A stretch of DNA of 64,000 nt from Okamejei kenojei (GCA_035221665.1 CM069154.1:6200001-6264000); one strand, 5' to 3'. Positions 6,837 through 63,295 are shown, counted from the stretch's first letter. The notes: generated by a model from the sequence alone, not told the origin. Made by a program: numbers and translations.

Positions 6837-7157
6837 TTTCAGGTGCACTGTGGGCAACGAAAACTGTAAGAGGAGTTGTGGGAAAAGATATCACAATCGA
6901 TTGTTACTATGCAGCAGTGCACCGCTCATCCACAAAGTACTGGTGTCACGGGTGGACTCGCTGGTGCACAGTTTTAGTGGAAACAAAAGGGCAACACGGA
7001 CGGAGTGGAAGAGTGTCAATCGCAGATGACAGGGCACGAGGAATATTTACTGTGACTGTGGAGGATCTTCACTCTGGAGATACAGGATGGTACAGCTGTG
7101 GAATTACTACACCTGACCTTGATCCAATGTTTGAGGTTCATCTCCAAGTATCTGACG
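6837..7157 (+). CDS. Gene 1 V-type Ig exon, CD300/pIgR-like (MDIR-like receptor)
   Basis: Acceptor tttttcctctcag|TTTCAG (alternative in-frame AG at 6842); donor GAC G|gtacgt; phase 1/1. Encodes (V)SGALWATKTVRGVVGKDITIDCYYAAVHRSSTKYWCHGWTRWC...DTGWYSCG...LQVSD, with the KYWC-x6-C extra cysteine pair typical of CD300/pIgR V domains. Confidence 0.9.
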
Positions 7158-7734
7158 GTACGTTTCGCAGCGATTGACTTGACGTCTCCACTGAAATGCC
7201 TAATCCATGTTTTCTCCGGGAAGGGTTAGGGCAGCCCCGATACCCCGAGGCTCCGCAGCAGTGCAGAGACCTGCGGGGAGCGGGCGGGGGTCGGGAAACC
7301 CCAACTCATGTTGCTCTCACCCAGTGCGGGCTCTGTCCCACTGAGCGGCCACCGACTTCCACTGGGAAGCTCAGCACATTCCCGGCCTCTGAACTGTATG
7401 AAATGTCACTCTGTCAGAGGTTTGCATTCCGACTCAAACTAATAATCGGACAGGAACAGATCAGTGAGAAACAAGTGCATCAAATGTATCAAAATGTCCT
7501 TACTGTCCTGGGACTCCTCCGTTGCTAGAGTGAGGCCAGACGCGAACTGGAGAAACAACACTTCATATTTCACTCGGACAGCTTGAGCGTTGAATTCTCC
7601 ATTTTTAACTAACGAACAAATCCTGCCCCATTTCCATCCAATCTGAATGTGCACACATGTCTTCCACATTCCCATCCTCCGCTCCCCCTCCGTCCATTCC
7701 CTGGCAATCCCCATCTCCAAGGTCCATCTCCATC

Positions 7735-8485
7735 CACTGTGGCAAGAGCAGGAAGTCAGATTATTATCTCAATGGTAGATTAGGAGAAGGGGAGTTGCAA
7801 CGAGACCTGGGTGTGCTTGTACATCAGTCACTGAAAATAAGCCTGCAGGTACAGCAGGCAGTGAAAAAAGATAATGGCATGTTGGCCTTTATTGGGAGAG
7901 GATTTGAATTTAGGAGCAAGGAGTTACACAGGGCCCCGGTGGGACCGGGAGTATTATGTGCAATTTTGGTCCCCCAATTTGATGAAGGACATTATTGCTA
8001 TTCAGGAAGTGCAGCGTAGGTTCACCAGGTTAATTCCCGGGATGGCGGGACTGACATATCATGAAAGAGTAGATCGACTGGGCTTGTATTTGCTGGAATT
8101 TAGGATGAGAGGGGAATATACAGAAACATATAACATTCTTAGAGGATTGGACAGTGTAGATACAGGAAAATGTTGAGTGAGTCCTGAATGTTGGGGGAGT
8201 CCAGAACCAGGGGTCACATTTTCAAAATAAGGACTGAGATGAGGAAAAACTTTTTCAGCCAGGGAGTTGTGAATCTGTGGAATTCTCTGCCACTGAAGAC
8301 AGTGGAGGCCAATTCACTGGATGTTTCCAAGATATAGTTTGATTTAGCTCTGAGGGCGAAGGGAATCAAGGAATAGGCAAAAAGCCAGAACGGGGTACTG
8401 ATCAACCATGATCATATTATATGGCGGTGCTGAATCGAAGGGCAGAATGGCCTGCTCCTGCATTTATTTTCTATGTTTCTATGGC
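7735..8485 (+). mobile_element. CR1 LINE 3' fragment
   Basis: QRDLGVLVH, QRRFTRLIPGM and CR1 3' UTR. Confidence 0.85.
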
Positions 8486-8513
8486 ACCTATGTCCCTTCC
8501 TCTCAACCTCTGC

Positions 8514-9355
8514 CTCACCTGGAATGACTGCTTAGGTTCTTGGATGAAGTTAAGGGGGGAGGTAAAGCGACAAGTGTAGCATGCCCTGGAGTTGCAAGGG
8601 AAAGTACCATGGGAGGTGGTTTGGGTGGGAAGGGACGAATTGACCAGGGAGTTACGGACGGAGCGGTCTCTGCAGAAAGCCGAAATGGGAGGAGATGAGA
8701 AGATATGGCCAGAGAAGTGGGATCCCGTTGGAGGTGGAGAAAATGTCGGAGGACGACATTATCAGTTGAACGACAGATAATCAACAGATTATCAAAAGAT
8801 AATCCTCCGACATTTTCACCACCTCCCCATATGCAGTCTTTCCAGGTGAGGCAGAGGTTCACCTGCACCTCCTCCAACTTCATCAATTGCATCCACTGCT
8901 CTGGGTGTCAACTGCTCTACATCGGTGAGACGAAGCGCGGGCTTGGTGATCGGTTCGCCCAACACCTCACACAGTTCGCATTAACCAACCTGATCTCCCG
9001 GTGGCTCAGCACTTCAACTCCACCTCCCATTCCGAATCTGACCTTTCTATCCTGGGCCTCCTCCATGGCCAGAGTGAGTCCCACTGCAAATTGGAGGAGC
9101 AGCACCTCATATTTTGCTTGGGCAGTTTACACCCCAGCGGTATGAACATTGACTTCTCCAATTTCAGGCAGTCCCTGCTTTCTCCCTCTTCCCCCTCCTC
9201 TTCTCAACTCTCCCACAGCCCACTGTCTCCGCCCCTGCCTTTCTTCATCCCCACCATCGGTCTGAAGAAGGGTCTCGACTCGAAACGTCGCCTATTTCCT
9301 TCGCTCCATAGATGCTGCCTCACCCACTGAGTTTCTCCAGCATTGTTGTCCACCT
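8514..9355 (+). mobile_element. Penelope-like element fragment (GIY-YIG) with an inverted 5' part
   Basis: CSGCQLLYIGETKRGLGDRFAQH, KLEEQHLIFCLGSLHPSGMNIDF; 8514-8770 is in the opposite orientation. Confidence 0.8.
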
Positions 9356-9672
9356 TCAGTTTAGTTTAGAGATACAGCACGAAACAGGCCCTTCGGCCCA
9401 CCGTGTCCGCGCCAAACAGCAATCCCCGCACATTAACACCATCCTACACCCACTATGGATATTTTTTACATTTACCAAGCCAATTAACCTACAAACTTGT
9501 ACGTCTTTGGAATGTGGGAAGTAACCGAAGATCTCGGAGAAAACCCACGCAGGTCACGGGGAGAACGTACAACTTCTGTACGGACAGCACCCATAATCGG
9601 GATCGAACCCGGGTCTCTGGCGCTGCATTCGCTGTAAGTCGGCAACTCTACCGCTGCGCCACCGTGACTGCC

Positions 9673-9720
9673 GAAACAAATGAGCAACATGGATGCAGTG
9701 GAAGAGTGTCAATGACAGAT
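9673..9720 (+). pseudogene. Fragment of a V exon
   Basis: ETNEQHGCSGRVSMTD matches ETNGQHGRSGRVSITD of the intact V exons; no splice sites; abuts a SINE. Confidence 0.75.
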
Positions 9721-9849
9721 CAAGGGTAACCCAGACATGGGTTGGACCATTCGACCCATCGTTGGGTAGGGGAAGAGTTGGTGGGCCAGCAAACGCTGTG
9801 TAATCCTGTCATGCCACCCCCCTTTTTGAAAAGCTTCGCCTGGGCCCGC

Positions 9850-10821: not shown

Positions 10822-10870
<49 letters not shown>

Positions 10871-10925: not shown

Positions 10926-11929
10926 CACCCGCGGGAGCGTCCCCACAGTCACTGACCGCGATGCACCGCTATCGGACCCCACCCTACACACCAGGGTGAT
11001 CCCCGCCCCCCCACCCCCCCCCCTCCGACCCCGGACTTTGTCACCCACACCAGGGTGATTCACCCCGGCCGCGGGGACAGACGGTTTATTTATTACCATC
11101 TCGGTGTTTGCTGAACGCACCCAAGCTCCCACGCACAAAACAGACAGCATCTCTTTTTAAGGCAGAAGGCAGTAATTTGATGGAATGCCGTTGCGATAAG
11201 TGCTGGTCATTTATAACCAAGGATATACAATTTCACGATCATGGCAGGATTACAAACGTGTTAGTTTGTGTGAATCTGTGGAGGAACTCCAGTAATCTCA
11301 CAAAATTTAAGTGAGTCTACTTGCACGTCGGTACATAAATTATAACTCTTATTTTTCTCAAAGTGAGTTGTGAAACGTAGCTCCCAGCTGGCGTGGAGAC
11401 GCTCAGAGGGGAAGTCCAGAAGAGAATGTGAATGGTTTACATCAGCGAGGCCAAGCAAATCCTCGGCCACAGTTTCGCTGACCACTTGTGCTTGGTCTGT
11501 CATGACCCAGAATCGCGCTTGACAGACACCCCATCCTCAACCTCCCCCGCTGATGCAGAGCAGCAGCAGTTTGCACCATCTGCACAATGCACTGCAGCAA
11601 CTCACCAAGACTCCCCAGGCAGCGCCTTCCAATTGCAACAGGCTCCGTGTTCAATGCATTGTTCTTCCCCATTCACACCCACATTGGCTGGGAAGCGATT
11701 TGGAACGACCTGTGCAGATGGTGAGGGACGGTGTACAGTATCTGTCTCTCATCGCAATCTAGGTGGAATTCAACAGAGTCACTATCAACAATTTTATACA
11801 AGGAAATTAAAAAGTTGTTGATAGTGATACTTTTGCACTAATTGCGTGTTTGAATGTTGGTATTGTAGAATTGTGGCAGAGTTTCAGATTCAAAGAAGAT
11901 TAACTGCAGATGCTGGAATTGTAAAACAA

Positions 11930-12317
11930 AAGGAGATGGTGCTGCTGTGTACTGGTACAGTGGCACACATGGTAGTTCTGGCAGCTGGGAGGATGGAGAG
12001 ACACTGACATGTATAAATCTGGTAAATGGGTTGTGAGGAGAAGGAGCTTTCTGACGGGTAATTTGGCTGTCGCTTTGAAATGTAACGTTTGAGTAGCTGA
12101 CATTGTCCTCCTTTGCACTAGGAGTGTCCCTGTCGATTTCCTTCATAATTGCACTGCTGCATACACAGTTTGATTTTGATTAGACAAATGGGCACCTTCC
12201 TTGTTGCTTTCATGTCCGACAGTGTTGCAGTGGTGTTGGCTCGAAGGGCCGAATGGCCTCCCCTGCACCTATTTTCTATTTTCTATAACCAATGCTCCCT
12301 TTTCCTGCTGGCAACTC
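11930..12317 (-). pseudogene. Inverted relic cytoplasmic exon encoding ITSM/ITIM motifs
   Basis: Minus-strand acceptor tcattttctcttttattttccag|GA GTT GCC...; GVASRKREHW-[short CR1 3' tail]-CNTVGHESNKEGAHLSNQNQTVYAAVQ-(frameshift)-MKEIDRDTPSAKEDNVSYSNVTF; the lower-coordinate end is approximate. Confidence 0.7.
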
Positions 12318-12379
12318 CTGGAAAATAAAAGAGAAAATGAGCTTTATATGATGATTTGTCTGATTTGTGATCGGTTTTA

Positions 12380-13003: not shown

Positions 13004-13324
13004 AAACCCTGTCTGCTCCTGTGCTTGGATTTCTGTCACCAGCCAATGTCTCCTGTCTTGGGGGCTCAGTGACAGTGTCCTGTGAGTCGGTGCGGGGATC
13101 CCTTCCCATTGGCTACGCCTGGTATGAAAAGACCCCATCTGTGGATTCAAAGATCTCTGACCACTATGCCCTGGATCTACATTGTCAATCATTCAAACAC
13201 CAACACCATCAATATTATTGCACAGCCTCAAATAAATGTGGATCAAAATCCAGTGAAATGGTCAATGTGTCCATCTCCAGCAATGACGGTCCCTGCAGTT
13301 TCCTTGTGAAAATCGACGGCACTG
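13004..13324 (+). CDS. Gene 1 C2-type Ig exon (FCRL-like)
   Basis: tccattcccacag|AA ... ACT G|gtaagt, phase 1/1; ETLSAPVL...VSCESVRGSLPIGYAWY...YYCTASN...PCSFLVKIDGTG. Confidence 0.9.
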
Positions 13325-14599: not shown

Positions 14600-14648
14600 G
14601 TCATGAATATTCTTGTGAACATTCGATAACACCCAATTACTCTGCAAG
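14600..14648 (+). CDS. Gene 1 stalk micro-exon
   Basis: ttccttgttccaacag|GT CAT GAA TAT TCT TGT...GCA AG|gtaaag; 49 nt, phase 1/2; GHEYSCEHSITPNYSA; paralogous copies at 29150 and 58691. Confidence 0.8.
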
Positions 14649-16401
14649 GTAAAGCGCTCTGTTTCCAATGAAAGTTACATTGTACTAATTGCTGGTGTGC
14701 TAATTCGGAATGGTTTAATTGGGAGAAAGTTGTGCCTTCCTTTCACTGGCACATGCGTGAGAGTATTGATCTGAATGCTCAGTGGCACAGCCTGTAGAAT
14801 CACAGCCTCACAGCGCCAAGACATAGGTTCATTAGGTGCTGTACTGCTGTCTATGTGTGGTCTGTAAGTTTTGCCTTCAATTGTGTTGGTTTCATGTAAG
14901 TGCGCCAGTTTCCTCCCAGCTCCCAAAGGCGTGTCAGTTGTAAATTTGGACGGTAGTGGTAGTTGATGAGAAAGTGGGGAAAATAAAAATAGGATTGACA
15001 CAGGAATCGTGTGAATGCAGTTGACTGAACGGCCAAATGACCTGGTGCTATACTGTGTTTCTCTATGGGTCTTTGATCCAAGGAACCCAAATATCAGGAA
15101 GCATAATCAATGTTTGTACATGTTTCAAGCCTGACACAAATATAAATGTATCTCTTAAATATAATTTAGTAATATATATAATTTGCAAACCAGTTATTAG
15201 TTAGCTCATCAGAACTGGGTTTACATCTCATTGTGGTGTGTATATGCTTGGACGACAAGAACAAGTTCCTCCATTTGCTGTTTTTCAGAGAGCACTCCCT
15301 GCGGTATTCACCATGACTTATCCATCACTAACCTCATTCCATGCTGTGAGACGAATATAGTTGTCAAACCCAAGTCTTGCCGTTTACCTTTGCCGAGACT
15401 TGCTCTGGTGTGGTGCTGATAGGAAAATGCATTATGAATTATGGGCTAAGACACCCCCCTTGATATCACTTGTGGCAAAACCTTGCTATTGATGGGATCA
15501 TACACCAAAAATTCGCTGGCGCAGAATGTGAGAAGACAGTCTTGAATCAGACCGAAATCAGCGAACTCAGTTAACTGACCCTCTCTTACATTGAACCTTG
15601 AAACCATTAAAAAAATATTATCCTTGAATATTCCATCACAATATCGTCATGAAAGTGGGAACACTTTGTTATTTATCTTATTACAATTGAAATAGGCCTG
15701 GCTTTCCATCACACTCTTGTGTGATATTTGCGTTAGGAAATAAGAATGTTAATAAAAGGCACGCCGTTATGAGCGAACCTTTAACCAAGCACGATTTCCC
15801 CATCCACACACCTACCGCGTTAATCCAAGTAATAACGAGGGTGTGAGATTAAGTATTATCATGTTTAATTACTTTTGTTAATTGGCCTCACCTGTTTCCA
15901 TATCTATTGCCTCACCTCCCTTCCACCATTAGAATTGATCCGTTTTTATCATTCCTGTCTATCCATATGGATTTTATTATAATCTTCCTAGCAGCTGCAT
16001 TTTCTTTCTTCCATGGTATTACACAGTTCTTTGTATCCTTACACATGCACAGTTTCCCTCTCCCATGACTCCCAGGCGGAAGAAGGTCTCGACCCAAAGC
16101 CTCACGCATTCCTTCTCTCTAGAGATGCTGCCTCTCCTGCTGTGTTTCTCCAAAATTTGTGTCTATCTACTCATTCTCAGTCTTATAGCCGTGCTCCAGC
16201 AATGAGGTTAGTGTTAGTGATGATGTGTTGTCCCTGCCCCCAGTCCAACACCCGTTATTTCTGCAAACTGATCTCCATTGGCTCTGCTGCCTCGCGCTGC
16301 TCCACTTCACCAAGATTATGGAGCAAATAACAGGTAAATGTTTTAAATATAAACCGTCACATTTTCTTCCATTGATTCAGTATCTCTTGCTCTTTGCCCA
16401 G

Positions 16402-16492
16402 TTACATCTCATGGAGAGTGGGGCGCTGGCTGCTCTTTCTCCTGCTTGTGATCTGGAGTATCTCAACCGCGGTGTTCACAAGAGGCTCTAAG
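16402..16492 (+). CDS. Gene 1 transmembrane exon with Arg (activating type)
   Basis: ctctttgcccag|T TAC...AAG|gtaggt; phase 2/0 fits the stalk exon; (S)YISWRVGRWLLFLLLVIWSISTAVFTRGSK. Confidence 0.85.
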
Positions 16493-17111: not shown

Positions 17112-17159
17112 AGACGTGATGAGTTAGAACCTCGCCACTCGGCCCACGAATTACAATGA
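17112..17159 (+). CDS. Gene 1 terminal coding exon, short cytoplasmic tail without tyrosine
   Basis: ttttcttttgcag|AGA CGT GAT...CAA TGA, phase 0; RRDELEPRHSAHELQ*; paralogue at 31573. Confidence 0.8.
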   Translation, partial: RRDELEPRHSAHELQ

Positions 17160-20429: not shown

Positions 20430-20480
20430 GCTCACTGTGGTTCACGATCTGACTTCCTGATCCTATCTTCCTCATTGCTA
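20430..20480 (+). promoter_or_regulatory. Candidate myeloid-type proximal promoter of gene 2 (RUNX and ETS/PU.1 motifs)
   Basis: TGTGGTT 20436-20442, ACTTCCTG 20452-20459 and CTTCCTCATT 20467-20476, 75-115 nt before the leader ATG; homologous block at 44900-44950. Confidence 0.4.
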
Positions 20481-20550
20481 TTAGAGAGATGTGTTTGTAT
20501 CTGAGAGCTCAGAGCTGAGCGACAGAGAGACAAGTGCTGGCATTGCCACT

Positions 20551-28160: not shown

Positions 28161-28164
28161 ATGT

Positions 28165-51110: not shown

Positions 51111-52364
51111 AAGGGATCGTAAGTTGTTTGCCACAGCAGAGATGGTTAAGTGTGTGTAGACATGTAATGGGGGAAATGGAACTCAGTGCATTGTGGTGAC
51201 GGGTCTGAAATCACACTTGAGAGGTTCCAACGTCATCAGGAAGTTAATTCTACACTTTTAAATTGTGTTTACAACTGAGGGGGAAGTCAGGATTGTGGAC
51301 TCATTATGGCAGTTCAAACCTTCCCTGCATTTGTCCAACTCAACTATGTCGCAAACCCAACAATTCCCTGGAGTCTGAGACTGAACCACTGTCCTCGCTC
51401 TATCCACCCACCTCCAACTCTCTCTCCATCCACTCTCCGATCCGCGGACCAGTCGTGCTGAATTGTAAAGGGCGAGACGCGGTCATTGGGAATAAAACCT
51501 GTCCCCGAAAAGAAGCGGAACATTGGTCTCCCAATTCAGTTTAGTTTATTGTCACGTGTACCGAGGTACAGTGAAAAGCTTTTTTGTTGCGTACTGAGCA
51601 GCCAACGGAAAGACAATACATGATTACAATCGATCCTCTTACAGTGCGTAGATACAGGAAAAGGAAATAACGTTTAGTGTAAGGCAAAGCCAGCAAGGTC
51701 CGATCAAGGATATTCTGAGGGTCATCAAAGATGTAGATAGGAGTTCAGCACTGCTCTCTGGATGTGGTAGGATGATTCAGATACCTGATCACAGCTGTGA
51801 AACTGGCCCCGAATCTGGCGGTGTGCGTTCTCACGCTAGTAACGCTCTCCAGTAAGGGACCCGTTTTATTGTAACCCGTCCGTAATCTGTCCTCAGTCAG
51901 GGCATTGTAAAGGCAGTGGCGGCGGTGAATCTCTAAACACGGGTCCGGCCCAGTGTCGGTTGAGGGATGAATGTTGGCAACGCCGCCGGCGGCACCGCCA
52001 ATGAAATAGCAAAGTGGGCTATTTCTGTAGGGTGAGAGGCCGGGCACAGCCTGGGATTGTTGAAAGGCAGCTCCTGCAACACTGCCGCGCTCCCTCAGCA
52101 CCGCACTGCGATCCCAGCCCAGTTTCTGCTCAGGGACCTGGAGTGGGAAGTGAACCCAAATTGTACTGACCCGCGGACAGAACACTGACACAACTGGTAA
52201 AATAACAGCACTGCCTGCACTTCAGACCGGAGACATTGACCGTGAAGCAATATGACACATCATGGAACGATTTAAGTTTTCATGCAAGTAATCTTCAAAA
52301 TGTATCTATTTCCATTAAACAGTTCATTTGCTCTCCATCTGAAAGTTTTTCCTCTCCATTTCAG

Positions 52365-52679
52365 CTGCAGTGTGGGGAAAGAGTAATGTAACAGGGGTTG
52401 TGGGAAGAGCGATCACAATCGATTGTCACTATGAAGCAGAGCACCGCTCACACACAAAATACTGGTGCCGTGGGAGGAGTCGCCAATGTACAGATATGGT
52501 GGAAACAAATGGGCAACACGGACGGAGTGGAAGAGTGTCAATCACCGATATACCGGCACTAAGAATATTTACTGTATCTGTGGAAGATCTTCACTCTGAA
52601 GATACAGGATGGTACAGCTGTGGAATTGCAACATCTGCCGACCATTCAATGTGCAACGTACATCTCCAAGTATCTGACG
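52365..52679 (+). CDS. Gene 3 V domain 3 exon
   Basis: ctctccatttcag|CT GCA GTG TGG...GAC G|gtacga; KYWCRGRSRQC, DTGWYSCG; extra Cys in HSMCNV. Confidence 0.85.
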
Positions 52680-53254
52680 GTACGATTATCAGTGATTGAC
52701 TTGACGTCTCCCCTTAAATGCCTAATCCATGTTTTCTCCGGGAAGGGTCAGGGCAGCACCGATATCCCGAGGCTCCGCAGCAGTGCAGAGACCTGCGGGG
52801 AGCGGGCGGGGGTCGGGAAACCCCAACTCATGTTGCTCTCACCAAGTGCGGGCTCTGTCCCACTGAGCGGCCACCCACTTCAACTGGGATGCTCAGCACA
52901 TTCCCTGCCTCTGAACTGTATGAAACATCACCCTGTCAGAGGTTTGTATTCCGACTCAAACTAATAATCCGACAGATCAGTGAGAAACAAGTGTTGCTCG
53001 CGGTCTGAATACCCCGAGAATAATGAACAAGGAATCAGTCCGCAGAGTTCAACAGACAGCGTTCAGTCCTCCCGGGGCAGGCCCGTCCGCTTCCCGCCCC
53101 CACCTCAGGGATCAGTCACTCCCTCCCCACCCCGCGCTCTCTCGCTCTCTCCCTCTGCCCCGTCAATGCGCCCCCACTGCCAGCAGCCACCGTCCACCCA
53201 CCGCCCGGCAGCCAGCCAGCCACTCCACCCGGACATCTTCCCGGTGGTAAACAG

Positions 53255-54190
53255 AATGAACTCATCTTTCGTCCCATCAGCCGTCGTACACACCATATAA
53301 TCCTCCGACATTTTCGCCACCTACAACGGGATGCCACAACTAGCCACATCTTTCCATCGTCACCGCTTTCTGCCTTCCGAAGAGACCGTTCCCTCCGCAA
53401 CTCCCTGGTCAACTCGTCCTTTCCCACCCAAACCACCCCGTCCCCATGTACCTTCCCCTTCAACTGCTGGAGATGCAACACCTGTCCCTATATCTCTCCC
53501 ATCTACTCCGTCCAAGGGCCTCAACAATCTTTTCGGGTGAGGCAGAGATTCACCTGCATCTCCTCTAACCTCATCTTCAATATCCGATGTTCCAGGTGTG
53601 AACAAGCGGATATAGCAGATGGGAGACCAAGCGCAGACTCGGCGATCGTTTCGCTGAACAACTCCGCTCAGTCTGCCTCGGTCTTCGCTACTTCCCGATT
53701 GCTAAGCACTGTTATTCCCCCCTCCCATTCCCAAACTGATCTTTCTGTCCTAGACCTCCTCCAGTGTCAGAGTGAGGCCAAAGGCAAATTGGAGGAACAG
53801 CGCCTCATATTTCGCGTGGGCAGCTTACAACCCAGCGGTTTGAATATTGACTTATCTAACTTCAAGTAACCCTTGCTTTACTTCTGTCTCCATCCCGCCC
53901 CCAACCGAAGCTTCCAATTAGTTTCACTGGTTTCCTGATTATGTTTTACTGATTGTCTGCCTCGGTGTCACCTTCCCTTCAGCTGACAATGATCCATTCT
54001 ACATTTTCCTTTAACATTGTCATCTTTGATCACTTGTTTTAACACCTTACCCATCCATTTCTCTTCTGTCACCCCGAACATGACTGTCAGGCTGAAGAAA
54101 GGTCCCGACCCGAAACGTCACCCATTCCTTCTCTCGAGAGATGTTGCCTGCTCCGCTGATTTACTCCAGTAGTTTGTGTCTATCTTAAAG
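53255..54190 (+). mobile_element. Penelope-like element fragment
   Basis: ORF 53537-53869 ending KLEEQRLIFRVGSLQPSGLNIDLSNFK. Confidence 0.8.
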
Positions 54191-55103
54191 CGATCGTGAT
54201 TAGTTCACGCGTTTAAATTTCAAAGCATTGGATAGGGTTATTGGCACGCTGGTCTTCATCAGTGAGAACATTCAGATCATAATTTGGGACAATATGCTTC
54301 AGATGTGCAGATGTTGAGTCCACACTTTGGGAATTGTGTTCAGCTTTCGTTCCACAGCTCCAAGAAAAGTGCCTTTGAGGTGGACGACGCTGCCTGGGCA
54401 GGATGGAATTGACACGGGGAGCGATTTGACAAACTCAGACTACAGTCCTTGGTGTGGAAATGATTGAGCGAGTAACTTATAGAAATGTATCAATCATGAG
54501 AAGCATATTCATTTTCCCACGATGTGTGGAATCAAAAAGTGGAGGACAGACGCAATGGGAACTATTTAAAAGGGGGGAATAGTAAGGAGCCATTGACCGT
54601 AATGGCATGTTTTGCACAGATGAGTGGCCGAAGCTGAACACAATTCGCCCAAGTTCGACCTCATCAACATATGTACAACGGAAACAAAACATCCCAACTT
54701 ATGTTCTGAGGGACAACATTTTCCACACATTGGGTAATATGTACATGGAACCTGCTGCCAGGGGGAATTTGTAGAGGCATTAAGAATAACAGCATTTCAA
54801 ATAAATGTTGGATATTTGCGTAGATTGGGATCATTGCGAGTGATAAATGAGAAACGCGGACATATGGAAATGTTCTAGAAACACATGTTGGTCGGCATTA
54901 ATGAGCTGTTATGATGGGCATCTTTCGGTTCCCTATAACTCAAACCTTCTTCGGTTTCTGTGCTTCGCACACTCATAGAGATGTAGACGAGCCGATGAGA
55001 TATCACCCGGCTCGTCGGGCTGAGATAAAGGGCTGCTGAGATTTAGCATTGTTTGTTTTTAACTGTTCATACAGGTGACTGAATGTTTGCTCCATTCCCA
55101 CAG

Positions 55104-55424
55104 AACCCGTGTCTGCTCCTCTGCTCAGATATCTGTCACCAGCAAATGCCTCACGTCTCGGAGGCTCAGTGTCAGTGTCGTGTGAGTCTGTCCGTGGATC
55201 CCTTCCCATCCAATACACATGGTTTGAGAAGAACGAGTGTTGGGTGTCATCGATCTTGAAAAGCAATCAACTGGATCTGAGTTGTGAAATCCTCAGATGT
55301 GAACACCTTCGATATTACTGCACAGCCTCAAATAATCGTGGGACAAAATCCAGTGAAATAGTCAAGGTGAAAGTCTTCAAAGGAGCAGGAACGTGCAGTT
55401 ATGTGACAGAAATGAACAATGCAG
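55104..55424 (+). CDS. Gene 3 divergent C2-type Ig exon (C2b)
   Basis: tccattcccacag|AA CCC GTG...GCA G|gtgagt; VSCESVRGSLPIQYTWF...YYCTASNNRG; clearly more diverged than the other three C2 exons. Confidence 0.88.
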
Positions 55425-56124
55425 GTGAGTGTTCCTCTCATGTCACTGAACCTGCTGTTATTCACCTTGTGGTGATGTTCGTGGATTTATTGTTAGTTGC
55501 AGACGGCATCATTTCAGCCACCGTGAGCTTATGGTGTAAAATGCGAGAGTGTGTTTGGGGGACTGGCAAATAATTGCCTGTTGCTTTCACCTGGGAGGTG
55601 TTGAGTTTCGAAAGGAGAGAAAGGCCTGCACTTATCACAACGGGTTGAGTGCATTCCATCAAATTCCTGCCTTCTGCCTTAAAAATGATTTTCTGGCTGC
55701 CGCTTAATGTCTCACAGTCTGAGACAGAGAAAGCAACCAAATGCATTATGTTTGGAACCATCATCATTTATTACCAAGGATGTACAATTTCATGATCATG
55801 TTTATGATATTTACTCTGTTAATTTGTGTTAAACTCCAGTAATTTCACAAAATTAAAGTGGAATCTACTTGGCCGTCACTCCATCAAGTATACCCCTTAC
55901 TCTTCGCCATTCACACCCACATTGGCTGGGAAGCGCTTTGGAACGACCTGTGCAGATGGTGAGGGACTGTGTACAGTATCTGACTCTCATCGCAATCTAG
56001 GTGGAATTCTACAGTTAAGAAAATCATTAGGCGGACTCCCCTGTACTCATTGATGTATACTATAATGTATATGTTTGTGAAAGGCTAATTTTGCTCTTCA
56101 ATTTATGAAATATTTTTCCTTCAG

Positions 56125-56442
56125 TTTCAGGTGCACTGTGGGCAGAGAGCGAAGTACGAGGGGTTGTGGGAAGAGCGATCTCAATCGATTGTCACTATGC
56201 AGCAGTGTACCGCTCACACATAAAATACTGGTGCCCTGGGACAAGTCGCCAGTGTACACATGTAGTGGAAACAACTGGGAAACATGGACAGAGCGGAAGA
56301 GTGTCAATCACAGATAACCCGGTACGAGGAATATTTACTGTGACTGTGGAGGATCTTCACTCTGGAGATACAGGATGGTACAGTTGTGGAATTGCTACAC
56401 CTGGCGAACCAACATTTAAAGTACATCTCCAAGTATCTGAAG
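56125..56442 (+). CDS. Gene 3 V domain 4 exon
   Basis: tttttccttcag|TTTCAG GT GCA CTG TGG...GAA G|gtaggt; KYWCPGTSRQC, DTGWYSCG; alternative acceptor at 56130. Confidence 0.88.
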
Positions 56443-57075
56443 GTAGGTTTCAAATCTGGTAAATTGTGAGGAGAAGGAGCAGCGAAGACTTACACGGATG
56501 TTGCGATGACTTGAGGGCCTGACATACAGGGAGGGGTTGAGCAGATTAGGACTTTATTTCTTGGAGCGCAGGAGGAAGAGGGATAATCTTATGGCAGGTA
56601 AAAAATCATGCGAGGAATAGGTCGATTAAACACACAGAGTCTTTTGCCCAGAGTAGGGGAATCGAGAACCGGAGGACAAAGTTTTAATATGAGGGGGGAA
56701 AGATTTGACAGGAATCTGGGGAGTAACGTTTTTACACAAAGGTTTGTAGGTACATGAAATGAACTGCCGACAGAAGTAGTTATGGCAGATACTATCGTAA
56801 CATTTACGAAAATATTGGACAGGTACCTGAATAGGGTATGTTTGGAGGGTTAAGTGCCAATAAAGGGCAGGTGGAACTAGTGTAGATTGGGCATGTTGGT
56901 CAGCGCGGGCAGGTTAGACCGAATGGACTGTTTCTACGCTGTATGACTCTATGATTCTATGTAGATGGATGGGTCAGATTCCAACCTGGCGGCTCTGGCA
57001 GGTATGATGGATATTGGCGAGTGTTTGATTTTCAGATGTTCACCCAGTGTCTGACTGTTTGCTCCTTTCCCACAG

Positions 57076-57396
57076 AACCCGTGTCTGTTCCTGTGCTTGG
57101 ATTTCTGTCACCAGCCAATGACTCCTGTCTCGGGGGCTCAGTGACAGTGTCCTGTGTGTCTGTCCGGGGATCCCTTCCCATTAGCTACAGCTGGTATGAA
57201 AATACCTCATCTGGGGATTCAAAGATCTCAGACCAAAATGCCCTGGATCTACATTGTCAATCCTTCAAACACCAGCACCATCAATATTACTGCACAGCCT
57301 CCAATAATAATGGAACAAAATCCAGTGAAATGGTCAACGTGTCCATCTCCAGCAGTGGCGTGCCCGGCAGTTTTCTAGTGAAAATCAACGGCACTG
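57076..57396 (+). CDS. Gene 3 membrane-proximal C2 exon
   Basis: ctttcccacag|AA CCC GTG...ACT G|gtaagt; close paralogue of the gene 1 and gene 2 C2 exons. Confidence 0.9.
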
Positions 57397-58690
57397 GTAA
57401 GTAGTGGAGGAAAAGAGGAAAAGAACGGGAAGTGGGGTGGGGCGGTTTATCAGATCACAATTGATAGAAGCAGAAATAGACCTTTCAATTATGACTCATC
57501 TATCGTCCCATCTTCACCCCACTCTCCTGTCTTCTCCACATAACCCCGACACCCTGAAATCCATGCACGTTATTTAATGAACTTATCAATATTAAAATTA
57601 TGGTTGATTGCCCATCTGTCAATACTTGGTTGCTGGGCTCCAGGAATAGATTCCCCAGTGCTGGTGGAGGGCAGATTCCTGGCTAGAACTTCCTTCTTAT
57701 GTTTACACAGTTTTAAACTAAGTTTGCAGTGACATCGGTCCAAGCACTTTCACTTTCCCGCCATCATCTCCACATGACCGACACTCAAATATGGGAAGGG
57801 AACAGAAATTATCCGTAAATGTAGCCACAGTTAAATCCTCGAGGACTGTGTCAGCGTTGGTCCGCTGTGTTAATGTTGGCCATTAAGTAGCATCGATACT
57901 AATCCCATTTACCAGCCCCTCACCCACAGTCTTCTCAGACTTGACAATTCAAGTGTCTTCACCGTCTAGGTTTAAAAATATTCCTTGCTCAGATACCCTC
58001 CAAATATTCTACTCCTTAACCCAACCCTATGTTCTCGACTTCTACGCACATCTGCTGTGCTGATGTCCCACAAAGTACCCTATCTATGTTCCTCATAGCT
58101 TTACACACCTGTAATAGGTTCCCCCTTCTTTTCCTGAGTGGATTATAATCCCCATCTATCCAACCTCTCCTTCGAACTGTAATATTTCATCCCAGGCACT
58201 ATCCCTCGCATGCAATCACATCCTTTAGTTTAGTTTAGAAATCCAGCGTGGAAGCAGCTGCCTTTAATCGGTAAACTAATTCCATCCTACTCACTAGGGA
58301 CAATTTACAGAAGGCAATTAACCTAAAAACCTGCACGTCTTTAGAATGTGGGAGAAACCCGGACCACTTGAATAAAACCCTCGCGGTCACATGGAGAACA
58401 TACAAACTCCGTGCAGACAGTACCCGTAGTCAGGATTGAACTCGGGTCTCTTGCGCTGTACGGCAGCAACTCAACAGCTGGGCCACTGCGCCGCCCTACT
58501 GTTGGCGACCTGAGTTGTAACCAGTGGTCCAGCTTATCATGCCAACATCTCCCACTTGCTGTAAATTACACTGAAGAAACATTGCCCTGTCAATTAAACC
58601 TATAAACTCCTTACATCGGACAAACATGCTCTCTTGTTCAACTGCAAGTGAATAGCAGTGAAACGAATTTTTATTTCCTTGTTCCAACAG

Positions 58691-58739
58691 GACTTGAATA
58701 TTCTTGTGAAACTTCGAAAAGAACCAATTATTCTTCAAG
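58691..58739 (+). CDS. Gene 3 stalk micro-exon
   Basis: gttccaacag|GA CTT GAA TAT TCT TGT...TCA AG|gtaaac; GLEYSCETSKRTNYSS; phase 1/2. Confidence 0.8.
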
Positions 58740-58974
58740 GTAAACTACACTGTTTCCAATGAAAGGTGCCATCTACTAATTGCTGGTGTTTTGATTGGGA
58801 TTGCTTCAATTGGGAGAAAGTTGTGTCTTCCGTTCACTGGCATTAAAGGCCCTTGAGAGCATTGGTCTGAATGCACAGTGACACAGCCAGTGAAACCACA
58901 GCCTAACAATGCCAAGACCTTGAACTTAGGTGCCGTCTATGCGTGTTCTGCAAATTTCGCCTTTCATTGTGTTG

Positions 58975-59775
58975 GAAGGAACTGCAGATGCTGGTTTAAA
59001 CTGAATATGGGCACAAAAAACTGAGTAACTCGGCGGGTCAAACAGCACCTTTGGAGAAAAGGGATAGGTGACGTTTCGGTTGAAGTCCCTTCTTCAGAGT
59101 GGAAAGGGAAAAGAGAGCGATATCGACGGTGATATAGAAAGATATAAAACATTGAATGATAGATATGCAACAAAAGTAACGGTGATGAATGAAACGATTC
59201 ATTGTTAGTTGTGGACTAGGTGAAAACGAGTTGTACGGACAATGAGACATTACAAGACAACACTGAAATTCGTACAATGACTAGGGTGGTGGAGGGACGG
59301 AGAGAGAGGGGATGCAAGGGTTATTTGAAGTTATAGAAATCAATATTTATACCGCTTGGCTGTAAGATGCCCAAGCAAAATATGTGGCGCTGTTCCTCCA
59401 ATTTCCATTTGGCCTCACTCTGGCAATGGAGAAAACCCAGAATAGACAAGTCAGTGTGGGAATGGGAGGGGGATTTAAAGAGTTTAGCAACTGGGAGATC
59501 ATATAGTCCCAGGCAGACTGAGCGTATGTGTTCAGTGAAACGATCGTCCAGTCAACGTTTGGTCTTGCTGACGTATACGAGTCCACACCTGATACAATAG
59601 ATGAGGTTCCATGCGGTTCAAATGAACTCTGCCGAACCTCAAATGACTGTTGAGCTCCTTGGACTGTCGAGGGAGGAGTTATAGGGACAGATGTTGCATT
59701 TCCTGTAGTTGAATGGGAAGGTACCTGGGGAGAGGGTGGTTTGGATGGGTAAGGATGAGATCACCAGGGAGGTAT
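58975..59775 (-). mobile_element. Penelope-like element fragment
   Basis: Reverse complement of the same GIY-YIG and tail sequence. Confidence 0.75.
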
Positions 59776-60169
59776 AGGTCATAAGGTCATAAGGGATAGG
59801 AGTAGAATTGGGGCATTCAACAGGGAACGGTCTCCTGCACACCACCTGGCATTCAAATACACTTGAACCATCTCCAAAACCTCCCTCCACTTTCTCGATC
59901 ACACTGTCTACATCACAGGAGATAGACTATCGGTGGATGTCTATTATAAACTGACTGACTCCCACAACTATCTAGACCACACTTCTTCTCACAGGATTTG
60001 TGTAAATGTGGTTGATGGTCAGCGCAGACCTGAAGGGCCAAATGACCTGTTTCCATACTGTGTCTCTCTATGGATCCTATGAGGCCAAATGTCAGAAAAC
60101 ATAACCAATGCTATTGCATGTCTTCAAGCCTGACACCAAAAGATAAATTTATCTCTTAAACATTCTTCT

Positions 60170-60580
60170 AAACAAGAGTTTAGAAGAATGAGGGGGGACC
60201 TCCTTGAGACATACATAATAGTGAAAGGCTTGGATAGAGTGGATGTGGAGAGGGTGTTTCCACCAATGGGAGAGTCTAGGATTAGAGGACATAGCCTCAG
60301 AATTAGATGTTCTTTTTAGGAAGGAGATGATAAATATCTTCAGTTCAAGGGTGGTGAATCTGTGGAATTATTTGCCACAGAATGCTGTGAAGGCCAAGTC
60401 AGTGTACACATTTAAGGCAGAGATAGATAGATTCTTCTTTCGTACAGGTGTTGGAGGTTATGAGGAGAAGGCAGGAAATGGGGTTAGGTGGGAGAGAAAG
60501 ATCAGTCATGATTGTATGGCGGAGTAGACTTGGAGGCAATTGGACCTAATTCTGCTCCTATTCCTTATGACCTTATGATC
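60170..60580 (+). mobile_element. CR1 3' fragment
   Basis: SSRVVNLWNYLPQ; ttatgaccttatga tail. Confidence 0.75.
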
Positions 60581-60726
60581 TTATTCTATAATAATATAAG
60601 TTTATAACTTGCAAACCAGATATTAGTTAACTCATCAGAAGGGAAATTGAACTTGTTTACATCTCATTGTGTCGTGTATCTGCTAGGGTTATAAGAACAG
60701 GATCCTCCATTTGTTGCCATTCATAG

Positions 60727-62505
60727 CCAATACAGGCTGAAAAGATGAAGTACGAGGGAAAGCTGGCCAGGAATATAAAGAAGGACAGTAAAAGCTTATT
60801 TAGATATGTTAAGGGGAAAAGAGTAGCAAAATCAGATGTGGGTCCCTTGAAGGCAGACACGGGTGAAATTATTATGGGGAACAAGGAAATGGCAGAGGAG
60901 TTGAACAGGTACTTTGGATCTGTCTTCACTAGGGGAGACACAAACAATCTCCCAGAAGTACTGGAGGACAGAGGATCAAAGGGGGTAGAGGAACTGAAAG
61001 AAATTATCATTAGGAGAGAAATAGTATTGGTTAGGCTAATGGTACTGAAGGATGATAAATCCCCTGGGCCTGATGGTCTGCATCCCAGGGTCCTCAGGGA
61101 GGTGGCTCTAGAAATAGTGGACGCATTGGTGATCATTTTCCAATGTTCAAAAGATTCAGGATCAGTTCCTGTGGATTGGAGGATAGCTAATGTTATTCCA
61201 CTTTTCAAGAAAGGAGCAAGAGAGAGAAAACGGAAAATACAGACCAATTAGCCTGAATTCGGTGGTGGGAAAGATGCTGGCGTCAATCATTAAAGAGGTA
61301 ATAATGGGGTATTTGGATAGCAGTAAAATAATTAGTCCAAGTCAGCATGGATTTATGAAAGGAAAATCATGCTTGATAAATTTTCTGGAATTTTTTGATG
61401 ATGTGACAAGTAAAATGGATGAAGGGGTGCCAGTGGATGTAGTGTATCTAGACTTTCAGAAAGCCTTTGATAAGGTCCCGCACGGGAGACTGGTGACTAA
61501 AATTAGAGCACATGGTATTGACACGGATAGAAAATTGGTTGGCAGACAGGAAGCAAAGAGTAGGAGTGAACGGGTCCTTTTCAGAATGGCAGGCAGTGGC
61601 GAGTGGAGTGCCACAAGGCTCGGTGTTGGGGCCGCAACTGTTTACCGTATATATTAATGATTTGGAAGAGGGAATTAGGAGCAACACTAGCAAGTTTGTG
61701 GATGACACAAAGCTGGGTGGCAGTGTGAACTGTGAAGAGGATGTTAGGAGGTTGCAGGGTGAACTGGACAGGTTGAGTGAGTGGGCAGATGCGTGGCAGA
61801 TGCAGTATAATATAGATAAATGTGAGGTTATCCACTTTGGTGGCAAAAACAAGGGGGCAGATTATTATCTCAACGGGGTTAGGTTAGGTAAGGGGGAGGT
61901 ACAGCGAGACATGGGTGTCCTTGTACACCGGTCACTGAAAGTCGGCGTTCAAGTACAGCAGGCCGTGTAGAAAGCTAATGGAATGTTGGCCTTCATAACA
62001 AGAGGATTTCAGTATAGGAGTAGAGAGGTTCTTCTGCAGTTGTCTGTTAACACCACATCTGGAGTATTGTGTGCAGTTTTGGTTTCCTAATTTGAGGAAG
62101 GACATCCTTGTGATTGAGGCAGTGCAGCGTAGGTTCACGAGATTGGTCCCTGAGATGGCGGGACTGTCATATGAGGAAAGATTCAAAAGACTAGGTTTGT
62201 ATTCACTTGAGTTTAGAAGGATGAGGGGGGGTCTTATAGAAACATATAAAATTATAAAAGGAAATTATAAAAGGAAATTATAAAAGGACTGGACAAGCGA
62301 GATGCAGCAAAAATGATCCCAATGTTGGGCGAGTCCAGAACCAGGGGCCACAGTCTTAGAATAAAGGGGAGGCCATTTAAGACTGAGGTGAGAAAAAACA
62401 TTTTCACCCAGAAAGTTGTGAATTTGTAGAATTCCCTGCCACAGAAGGCAGCGGAGGCTAAATCACTGGATGGATTTAATAGAGAGTTAGATAGAACTCT
62501 AGGGT
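60727..62505 (+). mobile_element. CR1 LINE ORF2 fragment truncated at both ends
   Basis: KSPGPDGLHPRVL, YRPISLNSV, LDFQKAFDKVPH, GVPQGSVLGP; lacks the normal 3' UTR. Confidence 0.9.
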
Positions 62506-62946
62506 ATATCTAATATATGGTGATTGCTGGTCGATGCAGATTTGGTGGGCCGAAAGTCCTGTTTCCATGCTGTATCTCTAAAATAAAATAAATTAAACTA
62601 AATTAAACTAAACTAAACCAAACTCGGCAGAACTAAACTAAAGTAATCATTGATATTAAAGTGTAACAGTTCCCATTCATTGTTTATGAAGGAGAAGGGA
62701 GGGTTCCTTAATGGTTGGATGCAATAGCTCTTGAACCAGTTTCACGATCGTTGGTCAATGTCACCTTACTGTGAGCAGATTAACTGCTGCATTACACACC
62801 AAAATAAATTCTACACTTCATTTCCTTTGCTGCACACTTCAAAAAAATCATGAAGGGTGCCATATAAATGCTTGACTTTTGTTCTTTACTGAAGGCCAGT
62901 AATCAATAATGAGCCATAACACCCTTCCCTATTCTCTGTCTGGCAG

Positions 62947-63035
62947 GCTCCCTTACATATTTGCGCCTGGTGTCACTGTGTTTCTCCTGATTCTCATCAT
63001 TGCCTTGTTTTGGTACCGAAAACGTAAAACCAAGG
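62947..63035 (+). CDS. Gene 3 uncharged transmembrane exon
   Basis: ctctgtctggcag|G CTC CCT...AAG G|gtgagt; phase 2 start fits the stalk; (R)LPYIFAPGVTVFLLILIIALFWYRKRKTK, a hydrophobic helix followed by a basic stop-transfer. Confidence 0.85.
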
Positions 63036-63240
63036 GTGAGTTTCTGATATCCCTTAAATAATTTCACAGTACATGTCTCAGTTCCTGCAGAATGTCAAGA
63101 GATTTAATTCTGTTCAACAAATGTCCTGCGTTAAAGTAATAAAGTGTAGGAGGAATCATGAACGATCAACAATGCTATCACGTTTGATGCAATCATGGTG
63201 ACTCGGTGACAAAAACTGTTCTTTTAACATCATTGTACAG

Positions 63241-63295
63241 AAACTTTCTGAGTGTGAAATGGCAGAGATGCGTGAGAACTAAGAGGCTAGTAGAA
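63241..63295 (+). other. Candidate first cytoplasmic exon of gene 3 (contains a stop as assembled)
   Basis: cattgtacag|AAACTT...AGAA|gtaaga; phase 1 joining gives ETF*, phase 0 gives KLSECEMAEMREN*EASR. Confidence 0.35.

Follow-up and report, generated by a model that had tools for sequence, protein, structure and literature searches.

Among described receptors, the closest to the locus analysed here are two clearnose skate members of the modular domain immune-type receptor (MDIR) family, MDIR3 (ABC86797.1, 701 aa; reportedly from the work of Cannon et al. 2006) and MDIR5 (ABC86800.1, 501 aa). The window, i.e., the whole 64-kb stretch of Okamejei kenojei DNA analysed (GCA_035221665.1 CM069154.1:6200001-6264000), yielded three gene models, referred to as genes A, B and C. 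MDIR3 resembled gene C in its leader, in the order V-V-C2(inner)-V(inner)-C2(proximal), in the LEYSC stalk and in the neutral transmembrane (TM) module (ending in WYRKRKTK in MDIR3), with 75 to 88% identity per domain and identical position-specific clades. It differed in that a third N-terminal V exon was found in gene C only, while the ITIM tail of MDIR3 (ITYAVV, VVYADV, SIYASV) was without counterpart inside the window. MDIR5 displayed the HEYSC stalk and the tail xRDExEPRHSAHELQ of genes A and B, and its Arg-bearing TM segment was identical to the window exon at 30 of 31 residues. It carries four ectodomains (V-C2-V-C2), compared with two in gene A (V-C2) and a single one in gene B (C2). 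Computed RefSeq models from skates, rays and sharks, named 'polymeric immunoglobulin receptor-like', 'Fc receptor-like protein 5' or 'CMRF35-like' (e.g., XP_078277138.1 from Rhinoraja longicauda and P0167 from Amblyraja radiata), were alike in domain types, stalk and both TM modules.

The mammalian CD300 (CMRF35) family comprises paired activating members, with a charged TM, and inhibitory members. Its V domain has the same KYWC-x6-C extra disulfide (E 1e-19 to CD300A), but CD300 possesses a single V ectodomain without C2, whereas every model in the window has a C2 domain and gene C has six Ig exons. The polymeric Ig receptor (pIgR) also shows tandem V domains of the same subtype, but its ectodomain is all V-type while the window models interleave C2 with V exons. 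FCRL5 shares RGSLPIxY with the C2 domains, but FCRL ectodomains are all C2-type, a make-up seen here only in gene B; genes A and C include V exons.

Exons and gene models

Stop-free frames of at least 60 aa were passed through a Cys/Trp/Y-x-C filter, which retained 14 frames, nine of them Ig exons. The nine comprise five V and four C2 exons, each of them open and lying on the + strand. Each of the nine followed a pyrimidine tract and AG acceptor and ended on a GT donor, and as read directly from DNA all entered and left in phase 1, as the initial annotation had claimed. Both motifs that it had named were also present, KYWC-x6-C in V exons and GSLPIxYxW in C2 exons. Together with the leader, TM and tail exons located in the window and a stalk exon of 49 nt in each gene, the Ig exons gave three predicted phase-compatible models in three different combinations of V and C2, i.e., variable ectodomains from two subfamilies. 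The proposed modular cluster with three architectures was thereby recovered.

Gene A was modelled as V-C2-stalk-TM(Arg)-tail:
6837-7157, +, V exon (V1), CD300/pIgR-type V-set (open frame, splice sites, Pfam, PDB; phase 1/1)
13004-13324, +, membrane-proximal FCRL-like C2 exon (C1) (frame, Pfam; phase 1/1)
14600-14648, +, stalk exon HEYSCEHSITPNYSA (phase 1 to 2; matches MDIR5 stalk HEYSCENPITSSYSA)
16402-16492, +, Arg-bearing TM exon YISWRVGRWLLFLLLVIWSISTAVFTRGSK (MDIR5 match; phase 2 to 0)
17112-17159, +, last exon, short cytoplasmic tail RRDELEPRHSAHELQ and stop (tblastn with MDIR5; acceptor and frame read)

No leader for gene A was detectable in positions 1-6836 of the window. The C1 exon shared 80 to 87% identity with the final C2 domain of MDIR3, MDIR5 and Leucoraja P0156, and the tail exon matched MDIR5 at 13 of 16 residues (81% over 16 aa by tblastn). 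The sole ITIM exon, at 12027-12323 on the minus strand, is inverted and stop-containing.

Gene B was modelled as leader-C2-stalk-TM(Arg)-tail:
20551-20599, +, leader exon MDKTMWIPILLISSLR (leaves in phase 1; donor G|GTGAGT)
22770-23090, +, C2 exon, the sole Ig exon of the gene (frame, Pfam; phase 1/1)
29150-29198, +, stalk exon HEYSSENSITSNYSA (phase 1 to 2)
30093-30221, assembly gap 1, in the stalk-to-TM intron (flanks colinear with the gene A intron)
30368-30458, +, TM exon with Arg (phase 2 to 0)
31573-31620, +, last exon RHDESESRHSDHELQ and stop (MDIR5 tail match; acceptor and frame)

No V exon was found between the leader and the C2 exon of gene B. The contig with the TM exon has a gap at each end, and gene B itself spans gap 1, which ends 146 nt before that exon and is crossed by no reading frame. 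On its two sides, 29524-29964 matched 15736-16172 of gene A, and the sequence from 30226 onward matched that from 16258 onward. The TM(Arg) exon was 98.9% identical in nucleotides between genes A and B versus 83 to 88% for its flanks, a comparison indicating that this exon is under constraint.

Gene C was modelled as leader-V-V-V-C2-V-C2-stalk-neutral TM:
45033-45069, +, leader exon MWIPILLISSLP
45551-45871, +, V exon 1 of 4 (V2), clusters with A. radiata P0167 domain 1 (support 0.87)
47831-48145, +, V exon 2 of 4 (V3), clusters with A. radiata P0167 domain 2 (support 0.98)
52365-52679, +, V exon 3 of 4 (V4), additional V compared with MDIR3, clusters with A. radiata P0170 domain 2 (support 0.98)
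55104-55424, +, inner C2 exon (C3), inner-C2 clade (support 0.999)
56125-56442, +, inner V exon (V5), inner-V clade (support 0.994)
57076-57396, +, membrane-proximal C2 exon (C4), top PDB match FCRL5
58691-58739, +, stalk exon LEYSCETSKRTNYSS (phase 1 to 2; matches MDIR3 stalk LEYSCVTSKRSKYSS)
62947-63035, +, neutral TM exon LPYIFAPGVTVFLLILIIALFWYRKRKTK (phase 2 to 1; MDIR3 TM match)

The V5 exon was 88% identical to domain 4 of MDIR3, and the TM exon 77% identical to the MDIR3 TM over 31 aa. A last exon at 63241-63295, implied by the end coordinate of the initial annotation, was abandoned: read in the phase that the TM exon dictates, it meets a stop after three codons, and it is without homology to the tails of relatives.

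Domain types and family membership

The V domains proved to be of the CD300/pIgR type, as proposed. The two V exons scanned, V1 and V2, matched Pfam V-set (E 1.2e-11 and 8e-14, respectively), and among solved structures V1 was closest to CD300A (74 bits, E 1.2e-19), followed by CLM-1 (1e-18), pIgR D1 (52 bits) and, more weakly, NKp44 and TREM2. All four C2 exons matched Pfam Ig_3, Ig_2 or Ig_C17orf99, some slightly below cutoff. Their FCRL-like character was borne out by C4, for which FCRL5 (9loc) was by far the top solved match (2.2e-39 overall; top single domain E 3e-7, 33.9 bits), with RGSLPI(L/S)Y common to FCRL5 and the window C2 domains; the second protein was titin (3b43; 1e-10 overall, top single stretch 16.0 bits).

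At E<=1e-20 the family search picked up 86 proteins, which belong to skates, rays, sharks and one chimaera and include MDIR3 and MDIR5 by name, in agreement with the resemblance to skate MDIRs first noted. Identity between window exons and MDIR3/MDIR5 domains reached 73 to 88% per domain, and every domain boundary of these two cDNA-derived proteins coincided with an exon boundary predicted in the window, where a charged TM and a gene cluster are both seen. We estimate at roughly 80% the probability that the window is part of a skate MDIR multigene cluster with the signalling roles proposed below.

Architectures were counted in 114 mapped relatives: 13 were annotated as V-C2, 10 C2-only, 6 V-V-C2-V-C2 and 15 (V-C2)x3. 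Alternating six-domain forms are therefore already annotated and common, and with the cDNA-derived V-V-C2-V-C2 of MDIR3 the suggestion that such a form was undescribed found no support. The order V-V-V-C2-V-C2 was displayed by none of the 114. What these relatives lack is this triple-V order only, as predicted from the exons; apart from one additional domain in one gene, the cluster adds an ordinary member to the described MDIR family.

Values of dN/dS among paralogous exons ranged from 0.45 to 0.97, which fits the fast evolution suggested initially. The highest, 0.95 for V3 versus V4 and 0.97 for C1 versus the gene B C2 exon, are compatible with relaxed constraint on some exons. In the per-domain tree, inner-V and inner-C2 domains formed position-specific clades.

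Alternative readings and proposed function

The repetitive nature of the locus brings up the question of its assembly:
38658-39391, gap 2, intergenic
35800-39611, +, degenerate fourth unit around gap 2 (frameshifts, indels)

The degenerate unit comprises a leader with a frameshift near 35860, a V copy riddled with indels (37833-38224) and a frameshifted TM copy (39489-39611). The gap-bounded block 30224-38657 duplicates 39392-46307, and unique, error-like, insertion-biased differences accumulate toward gap 2 from both sides. The flanks of gap 2 are probably error-rich contig ends, the two ends of one locus, and since they resemble such ends the degenerate copies may be assembly artefacts. That the three architectures themselves result from misassembly appears improbable: despite the two gaps and this duplicated block, genes A and C are gap-free, gene B keeps its colinearity with gene A on either side of gap 1, and the paralogues V3 and V4 are distinct, with a separate A. 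radiata counterpart for each. DNA run X1 covered all 30 bins of 52300-58299, but the contigs there reached 604 nt at most, so long-range order is unconfirmed by DNA contigs. No RNA run was found to contain the stretch. Nothing but repeats and a few contigs of 91 to 93% on C2 exons came from three runs presumed to be RNA, of which two were flagged as probably DNA.

Two further alternatives concern single genes. The gene C mRNA could really be five-domain V-V-C2-V-C2, as in MDIR3 and the Amblyraja models, with V3 or V4 skipped, alternative or decaying, and the six-domain form existing on paper only, a reading that we regard as a serious but less favoured one. It fits the 6 relatives with that order, cDNA-derived MDIR3 included, the pairing of V3 and V4 with the second domain of different A. 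radiata models, their dN/dS, the loss in both of the upstream AG of a tandem acceptor kept in V1, V2 and V5, and RefSeq isoforms set apart by entire domain cassettes (P0156 VCVCVC, P0172 VCVC). However, V3 and V4 are both open with all framework Cys and Trp kept, both display a pyrimidine tract with AG acceptor and a GTACG donor, and neither leader nor TM exon lies between them. Likewise, gene B would tentatively be a truncated, decaying copy after loss of its V exon rather than a working C2-only receptor. Besides the dN/dS of its C2 exon, LHRQ replaces LHCQ of C1 and C4, which removes one Cys from a likely extra pair; the final leader residue is Arg and not Pro, a LINE of about 4 kb sits in the C2-to-stalk intron, and LINE debris occupies the expected place of the V exon. 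Against decay, each of the five exons has an open frame and intact splice sites, the TM exon is nearly identical to that of gene A, and among the C2-only relatives the TM(Arg) form is annotated in, e.g., Stegostoma and Mobula.

A multi-V MDIR3-like receptor might also act as the Fc/poly-Ig receptor of cartilaginous fish, binding IgM, IgW or IgNAR through a pIgR-D1-like V and an FCRL-like C2, which we consider unlikely. The pIgR D1 alignment spans the entire V domain, including the CDR1-like stretch preceding KYWC, and FCRL5 is the nearest solved relative of the C2 domain; nevertheless CD300A outscored pIgR D1 in single-domain comparison, CD300 ligands are lipids, and a pIgR-type long tail was not visible in the window. 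Also in favour, according to passages of PMC4016189 and PMC13337447, PIGR and FCRL genes are missing from cartilaginous fish, and the later paper asks how these animals perform PIGR and FCRL functions. Conversely, the C-terminus of shark J-chain is described in part of PMC4279169 as poorly conserved, which argues against mammalian-style transport.

Within the MDIR reading, the receptors would be type I membrane proteins with two kinds of module, each encoded by an exon: a V of the CD300/pIgR type that has an extra C-C' disulfide, and an FCRL-like C2. Because all V and C2 exons are in phase 1/1, module number and order could alter as exons are duplicated, lost or skipped. Ligand binding is predicted to occur via the N-terminal V domains. 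The initial annotation proposed a family of activating and inhibitory receptors, of which the two TM modules, Arg-bearing and neutral, were both found, while the inhibitory nature of gene C is taken from its relatives only: the + strand of 57400-64000 showed no ITIM exon, and 63036-64000 no homology to the tails of relatives, the cytoplasmic tail being absent from the window. Given the ITIM-rich tail of its relatives, gene C is probably the inhibitory partner, and the cytoplasmic exons of this MDIR3-like gene would lie past the window end. Genes A and B, with their conserved stalk, a TM helix whose Arg sits close to the outer end and a tail of 15 residues, would signal, in analogy to other paired receptors, via pairing with an acidic-TM ITAM adaptor.

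Exon structure of the three receptor genes

The cluster belonged to the modular domain immune-type receptor (MDIR) family and displayed a modular exon structure with two alternative signalling ends, an Arg-bearing transmembrane exon, TM(Arg), in genes A and B and a neutral one in gene C. In this vertebrate DNA, where LINE/CR1 reverse-transcriptase debris and segmental duplications were abundant across the window, a filter for the pattern C...W...Y-x-C on stop-free frames of at least 60 aa retained 14 frames, nine of which were immunoglobulin (Ig) exons, all on the plus strand (five V and four C2). As read from the DNA at their borders, all nine were preceded by an AG acceptor after a pyrimidine tract, followed by a GT donor, and in phase 1 on both sides. 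A tandem acceptor (CAGTTTCAG) was found in V1, V2 and V5, and its upstream AG yields the VSGA(L/V)W start of database proteins, in agreement with the start at 6837 in the initial annotation. In V3 and V4 the upstream AG was lost and only the downstream AG was left, 6 nt later and with the phase kept. The remaining exons were located by tblastn of two proteins, one from Leucoraja and one from Mobula, followed by reading of the DNA; the Mobula protein, a match of the V1 exon, has a leader and an Arg-containing TM. Searches of the window were run exon by exon, and the longer queries were database proteins.

Predicted exons of genes A, B and C (position, strand, feature; borders of Ig exons read from the DNA)
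6837-7157, +, V1 exon, gene A
45551-45871, +, V2 exon, gene C
47831-48145, +, V3 exon, gene C
52365-52679, +, V4 exon, gene C
56125-56442, +, V5 exon, gene C
13004-13324, +, C1 exon, gene A
22770-23090, +, C2 exon, gene B
55104-55424, +, C3 exon, gene C
57076-57396, +, C4 exon, gene C
20551-20599, +, leader exon, gene B, ending G|GTGAGT, phase 1
45033-45069, +, leader exon, gene C, ending G|GTGAGT, phase 1
14600-14648, +, stalk exon, first of three 49-nt copies, phase 1 to 2
29150-29198, +, stalk exon, second copy
58691-58739, +, stalk exon, third copy
16402-16492, +, TM(Arg) exon, first of two intact copies, phase 2 to 0
30368-30458, +, TM(Arg) exon, second intact copy
17112-17159, +, last exon, 15 codons
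31573-31620, +, last exon, 15 codons
62947-63035, +, neutral TM exon, gene C, phase 2 to 1

The exon phases chained without a break into three models, V-C2-stalk-TM(Arg)-tail for gene A, leader-C2-stalk-TM(Arg)-tail for gene B and leader-V-V-V-C2-V-C2-stalk-TM(neutral) for gene C, so that exons, phases and splice sites read from the DNA bore out the three architectures with phase 1/1 Ig exons initially proposed. The domain boundaries of the cDNA-derived MDIR3 and MDIR5 all coincided with exon boundaries predicted in the window. This agreement supports the predicted splicing indirectly, but better than any other evidence available. The hydrophobic frame at 14676 and its paralogues (near 29200 and 58773) were rejected as TM(Arg) since this region corresponds to the 49-nt stalk exon; the true TM(Arg) exon was located via the Mobula protein. 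The leader pattern search gave two matches, in genes B and C, and no leader for gene A was detected in 1-6836 by pattern search, sensitive blastn or a signal-peptide/donor scan.

Several other coding-like segments lay around these exons. A plus-strand V-domain fragment of about 25 residues ending in a stop (9661-9744), in the V-to-C2 intron of gene A, probably derives from a V exon that has since been lost. A plus-strand ORF segment at 11486-11593 shared 62% identity with residues 9-45 of P0019, a Rhinoraja RefSeq relative in which they stand between leader and C2; it is either an intronic element that became an exon or the result of a wrongly modelled exon in P0019. Sequences upstream of the leaders (44838-45068 and 20368-20595) shared 76-90% protein identity with the N-termini of the annotated relatives P0167 of Amblyraja radiata and P0005 of Leucoraja erinacea, two RefSeq models in which 5' UTR or upstream sequence seems to have been translated, or neighbouring genes fused.

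Domain identity, relatives and domain order

The two V exons scanned, V1 and V2, matched the Pfam V-set family (E 1e-11 and 8e-14). Among solved structures, pIgR was the best whole-protein match of the V domains (1.3e-46, summed over five domains), with D1 as its best single domain (51.7 bits), while the best single-domain proteins were CD300A (74 bits, 1.2e-19) and CD300LF/CLM-1 (71 bits), NKp44, TLT-1, TIM and TREM2 being far behind these two. The KYWC-x6-C motif was present in all five V exons. The C2-type exons gave Pfam matches near the cutoff (Ig_3, Ig_2, Ig_C17orf99), and their best solved structure was FCRL5 (2.2e-39 overall, best domain 33.9 bits, RGSLPIxY in common), followed by titin (1e-10 overall, best single stretch 16.0 bits). 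Pfam and structure matches thus agreed with the assignment of the initial annotation, CD300/pIgR-type V and FCRL-type C2.

An exhaustive search with the C4 exon retrieved 1876 proteins at E<=1e-3, of which 46 reached E<=1e-30. Its close relatives (50-84% identity) were elasmobranch RefSeq models named 'polymeric immunoglobulin receptor-like', 'Fc receptor-like protein 5', 'CMRF35-like molecule' or 'CXADR-like', or left uncharacterized. With Rhinoraja longicauda XP_078277138.1 (809 aa) as query, 86 proteins were obtained at E<=1e-20 among 8000 candidates scored, from skates, rays, sawfish, sharks and Callorhinchus. The best matches of the window were skates, with up to about 90% amino acid identity to A. 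radiata. Two relatives from the clearnose skate bore family names, MDIR3 (ABC86797.1, 701 aa) and MDIR5 (ABC86800.1, 501 aa), and the window exons mapped onto both, so that the MDIR membership suspected from sequence alone was confirmed. The MDIR3 accession in the database agrees with that quoted in PMC3031540.

Domain trees (FastTree, SH-like support, rooted on a chimaera protein, 12 relatives picked from the 230 fetched) displayed position-specific subfamilies common to four skate species. Inner V domains grouped with V5 (support 0.994) and inner C2 domains with C3 (0.999), while the clades enclosing the membrane-proximal C2 group (C1, the C2 exon of gene B, and C4) had supports of 0.76-0.88. 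V3 and V4 each paired with the second domain of a different A. radiata model (0.981 and 0.982), so that they are old paralogues rather than a fresh duplicate.

The MDIR family was reportedly first described in 2006, in a paper said to report one to six ectodomains, and MDIR-type proteins are now widely annotated. Architectures were mapped on 230 proteins. With a domain called recognisable from 40% identity and 70 aa upwards, 114 of them had one or more. These comprised VCVC (30/114), VCVCVC (15/114), VC (13/114), C only (10/114), VVCVC (6/114, MDIR3 included) and VVVC (1/114), counts that are rough because several long RefSeq models clearly join adjacent genes into one, such as the relative P0007 with a TRIM N-terminus or P0006 with a mid-protein TM segment. 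The VVVCVC order of gene C was found in none of the 114 relatives mapped. The initial interpretation therefore stood as to family and logic, but not in proposing that the alternating six-domain form may be undescribed, since VCVCVC is already annotated and the exact triple-V order alone was absent from these 114. As predicted from its exons, the locus adds a triple-V variant to a known family, not a new kind of receptor.

Signalling ends, selection and candidate ligands

The two named MDIRs carry the same alternative ends as the window. MDIR5 (V-C2-V-C2) combines an HEYSC stalk with a TM(Arg) and a short tail; the TM(Arg) exon of the window matched it at 30 of 31 residues and the tail exon of gene A at 13 of 16. 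The R-W core of TM(Arg) was also present in Mobula, Pristis, Scyliorhinus, Stegostoma and Hemiscyllium models. MDIR3 (V-V-C2-V-C2) has an LEYSC stalk, a neutral TM that ends in WYRKRKTK and, in its tail, the ITIM-like motifs ITYAVV, VVYADV and SIYASV. For gene C, a motif scan of 57400-64000 on the plus strand gave no ITIM, and Smith-Waterman scores of the tails of MDIR3, A. radiata P0167 and the L. erinacea relative P0156 against 63036-64000 were within the range of shuffled controls. The exon that the end coordinate of the initial annotation implies (63241-63295, donor GTAAGA) does not hold, as in the frame dictated by the TM exon it encodes Glu-Thr-Phe and then a stop. The cytoplasmic tail of gene C is either beyond the window or lost, and an inhibitory character for this gene would follow from its relatives.

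An ITIM-type cytoplasmic exon (VSYSNV...RQKAPSPHNP) was found inverted on the minus strand at 12027-12323, within the V-to-C2 intron of gene A. It shared 37-48% identity with the P0006 tail of Rhinoraja, with a stop in one of the two aligned stretches. In gene C, the intron leading from stalk to neutral TM (59990-62900) contained a CR1-type LINE with reverse-transcriptase ORFs at 60745-61970, and in genes A and B the TM(Arg) exon occupies the equivalent position. The LINE and the TM positions fit an exchange of signalling ends at the stalk-to-TM intron.

Between paralogous exons, dN/dS ranged from 0.45 to 0.95 for V and from 0.54 to 0.97 for C2, values that are high, as in fast-evolving receptor families, with some pairs indistinguishable from relaxed constraint (V3/V4, 0.95; C1 and the C2 exon of gene B, 0.97). 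The TM(Arg) exons of genes A and B differed at 1 of 94 aligned positions while their flanks were 83-88% identical, which suggests that purifying selection or gene conversion has acted on the predicted signalling module.

By analogy with KIR, LILR, CD300 and TREM, the Arg in the outer TM would recruit an ITAM adaptor whose TM has an acidic residue, and genes A and B would be activating. On the model of paired IgSF receptors, gene C, like MDIR3, would recruit phosphatases through ITIMs, and the N-terminal V domains would bind ligand. The cluster illustrates cleanly, at the genomic level, how paired receptors arise by exon gain and loss, the ingredients being phase 1/1 Ig exons and interchangeable ends (an Arg-TM with a short tail, or a neutral TM). 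Candidate ligands are lipids, which are the ligands of CD300, and Ig, the ligand of pIgR and FCRL.

Clear pIgR/CD300-type V and FCRL5-type C2 domains, in a family that ranges across skates, rays, sharks and a chimaera, make MDIRs obvious candidates for Ig binding. Homologues of PIGR, FcR gamma, FCRL and classical FcR were not found in shark genomes according to a 2014 survey (PMC4016189), and a 2026 review (PMC13337447) repeats this absence and asks by what means cartilaginous fish achieve opsonic phagocytosis and transport Ig. Given such domains in the MDIR family, this absence holds at most for orthologues and not for homologous domains. That MDIR3-like receptors, with a pIgR-D1-like V and an FCRL5-like C2, are functional Fc/poly-Ig receptors of cartilaginous fish is improbable (about one chance in ten); if true, they would fill the receptor class that both papers describe as missing, and gene C, with its triple V, may be an extreme case among them. 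J-chain divergence, which according to a 2014 review (PMC4279169) makes mammalian-style transport of shark IgM unlikely, counts against a pIgR-like role for MDIRs. A literature search whose coverage left out most subscription papers found no functional study of MDIRs, and this carries little weight.

Read coverage and assembly around the genes

Among 24 sequencing runs listed, 20 held part of the stretch and none was on record as RNA. Reads were examined over 52300-58299 in X22, X23 and X24, guessed to be RNA, the first two being flagged as probably DNA, and in the DNA run X1. Contigs of X22, X23 (both probably DNA) and X24 were mostly repeat pile-ups. Six records fell on C4 (89-93% alike), three in X24 and three in X22, which is probably DNA and gave a further record confined to the last 74 nt of this exon (57325-57398); X23, also probably DNA, gave one 93% record on C3. 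No listed record from these three runs, two of them probably DNA, lay on V4 or V5 or spanned an exon-exon joint. Two contigs stopped at 57398, the exon end plus GT, a coincidence that may simply reflect more divergent paralogous introns. X1 covered all 30 bins, with contigs of at most 604 nt, too short for long-range order.

Two gaps interrupted the assembly. The gap at 30093-30221 lay in the stalk-to-TM intron of gene B and ended 146 nt before the TM exon. Its flanks were colinear with the gene A intron (29524-29964 with 15736-16172, and 30226 onward with 16258 onward), no reading frame crossed it, and no exon is expected within. The gap at 38658-39391 was intergenic, and its flanking blocks (30224-38657 and 39392-46307) were mutual copies agreeing at about 97-98% in mid-block.

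Differences around this intergenic gap, scored as unique by three-way comparison, were clustered close to it on either side.

Unique differences in the copies left and right of the gap at 38658-39391
TM block: left, 0 inserted bases, 0 deleted, 10 substitutions; right, 110 inserted, 22 deleted, 132 substitutions
Leader block: left, 71 inserted, 35 substitutions; right, 6 inserted, 4 substitutions
V block: left (37694-38224), 40 inserted, 59 substitutions; right (V2), 0 inserted, 6 substitutions

Since these insertion-biased differences mass toward the gap from both sides, three degenerate exons, a frameshifted leader near 35860, an indel-ridden V at 37833-38224 and a frameshifted TM at 39489-39611, may be assembly artefacts. 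A real duplication would be uniformly diverged, whereas the pattern looks like a false tandem duplication made by two unmerged, error-rich contig ends of one locus, and an artefact beside the three genes is probable. Real or artefactual, the degenerate exons are outside genes A, B and C. The stretch leading to the gap (36001-38000) displayed a low GC content and a strong G-over-C skew (0.72), and may be part of the low-quality sequence.
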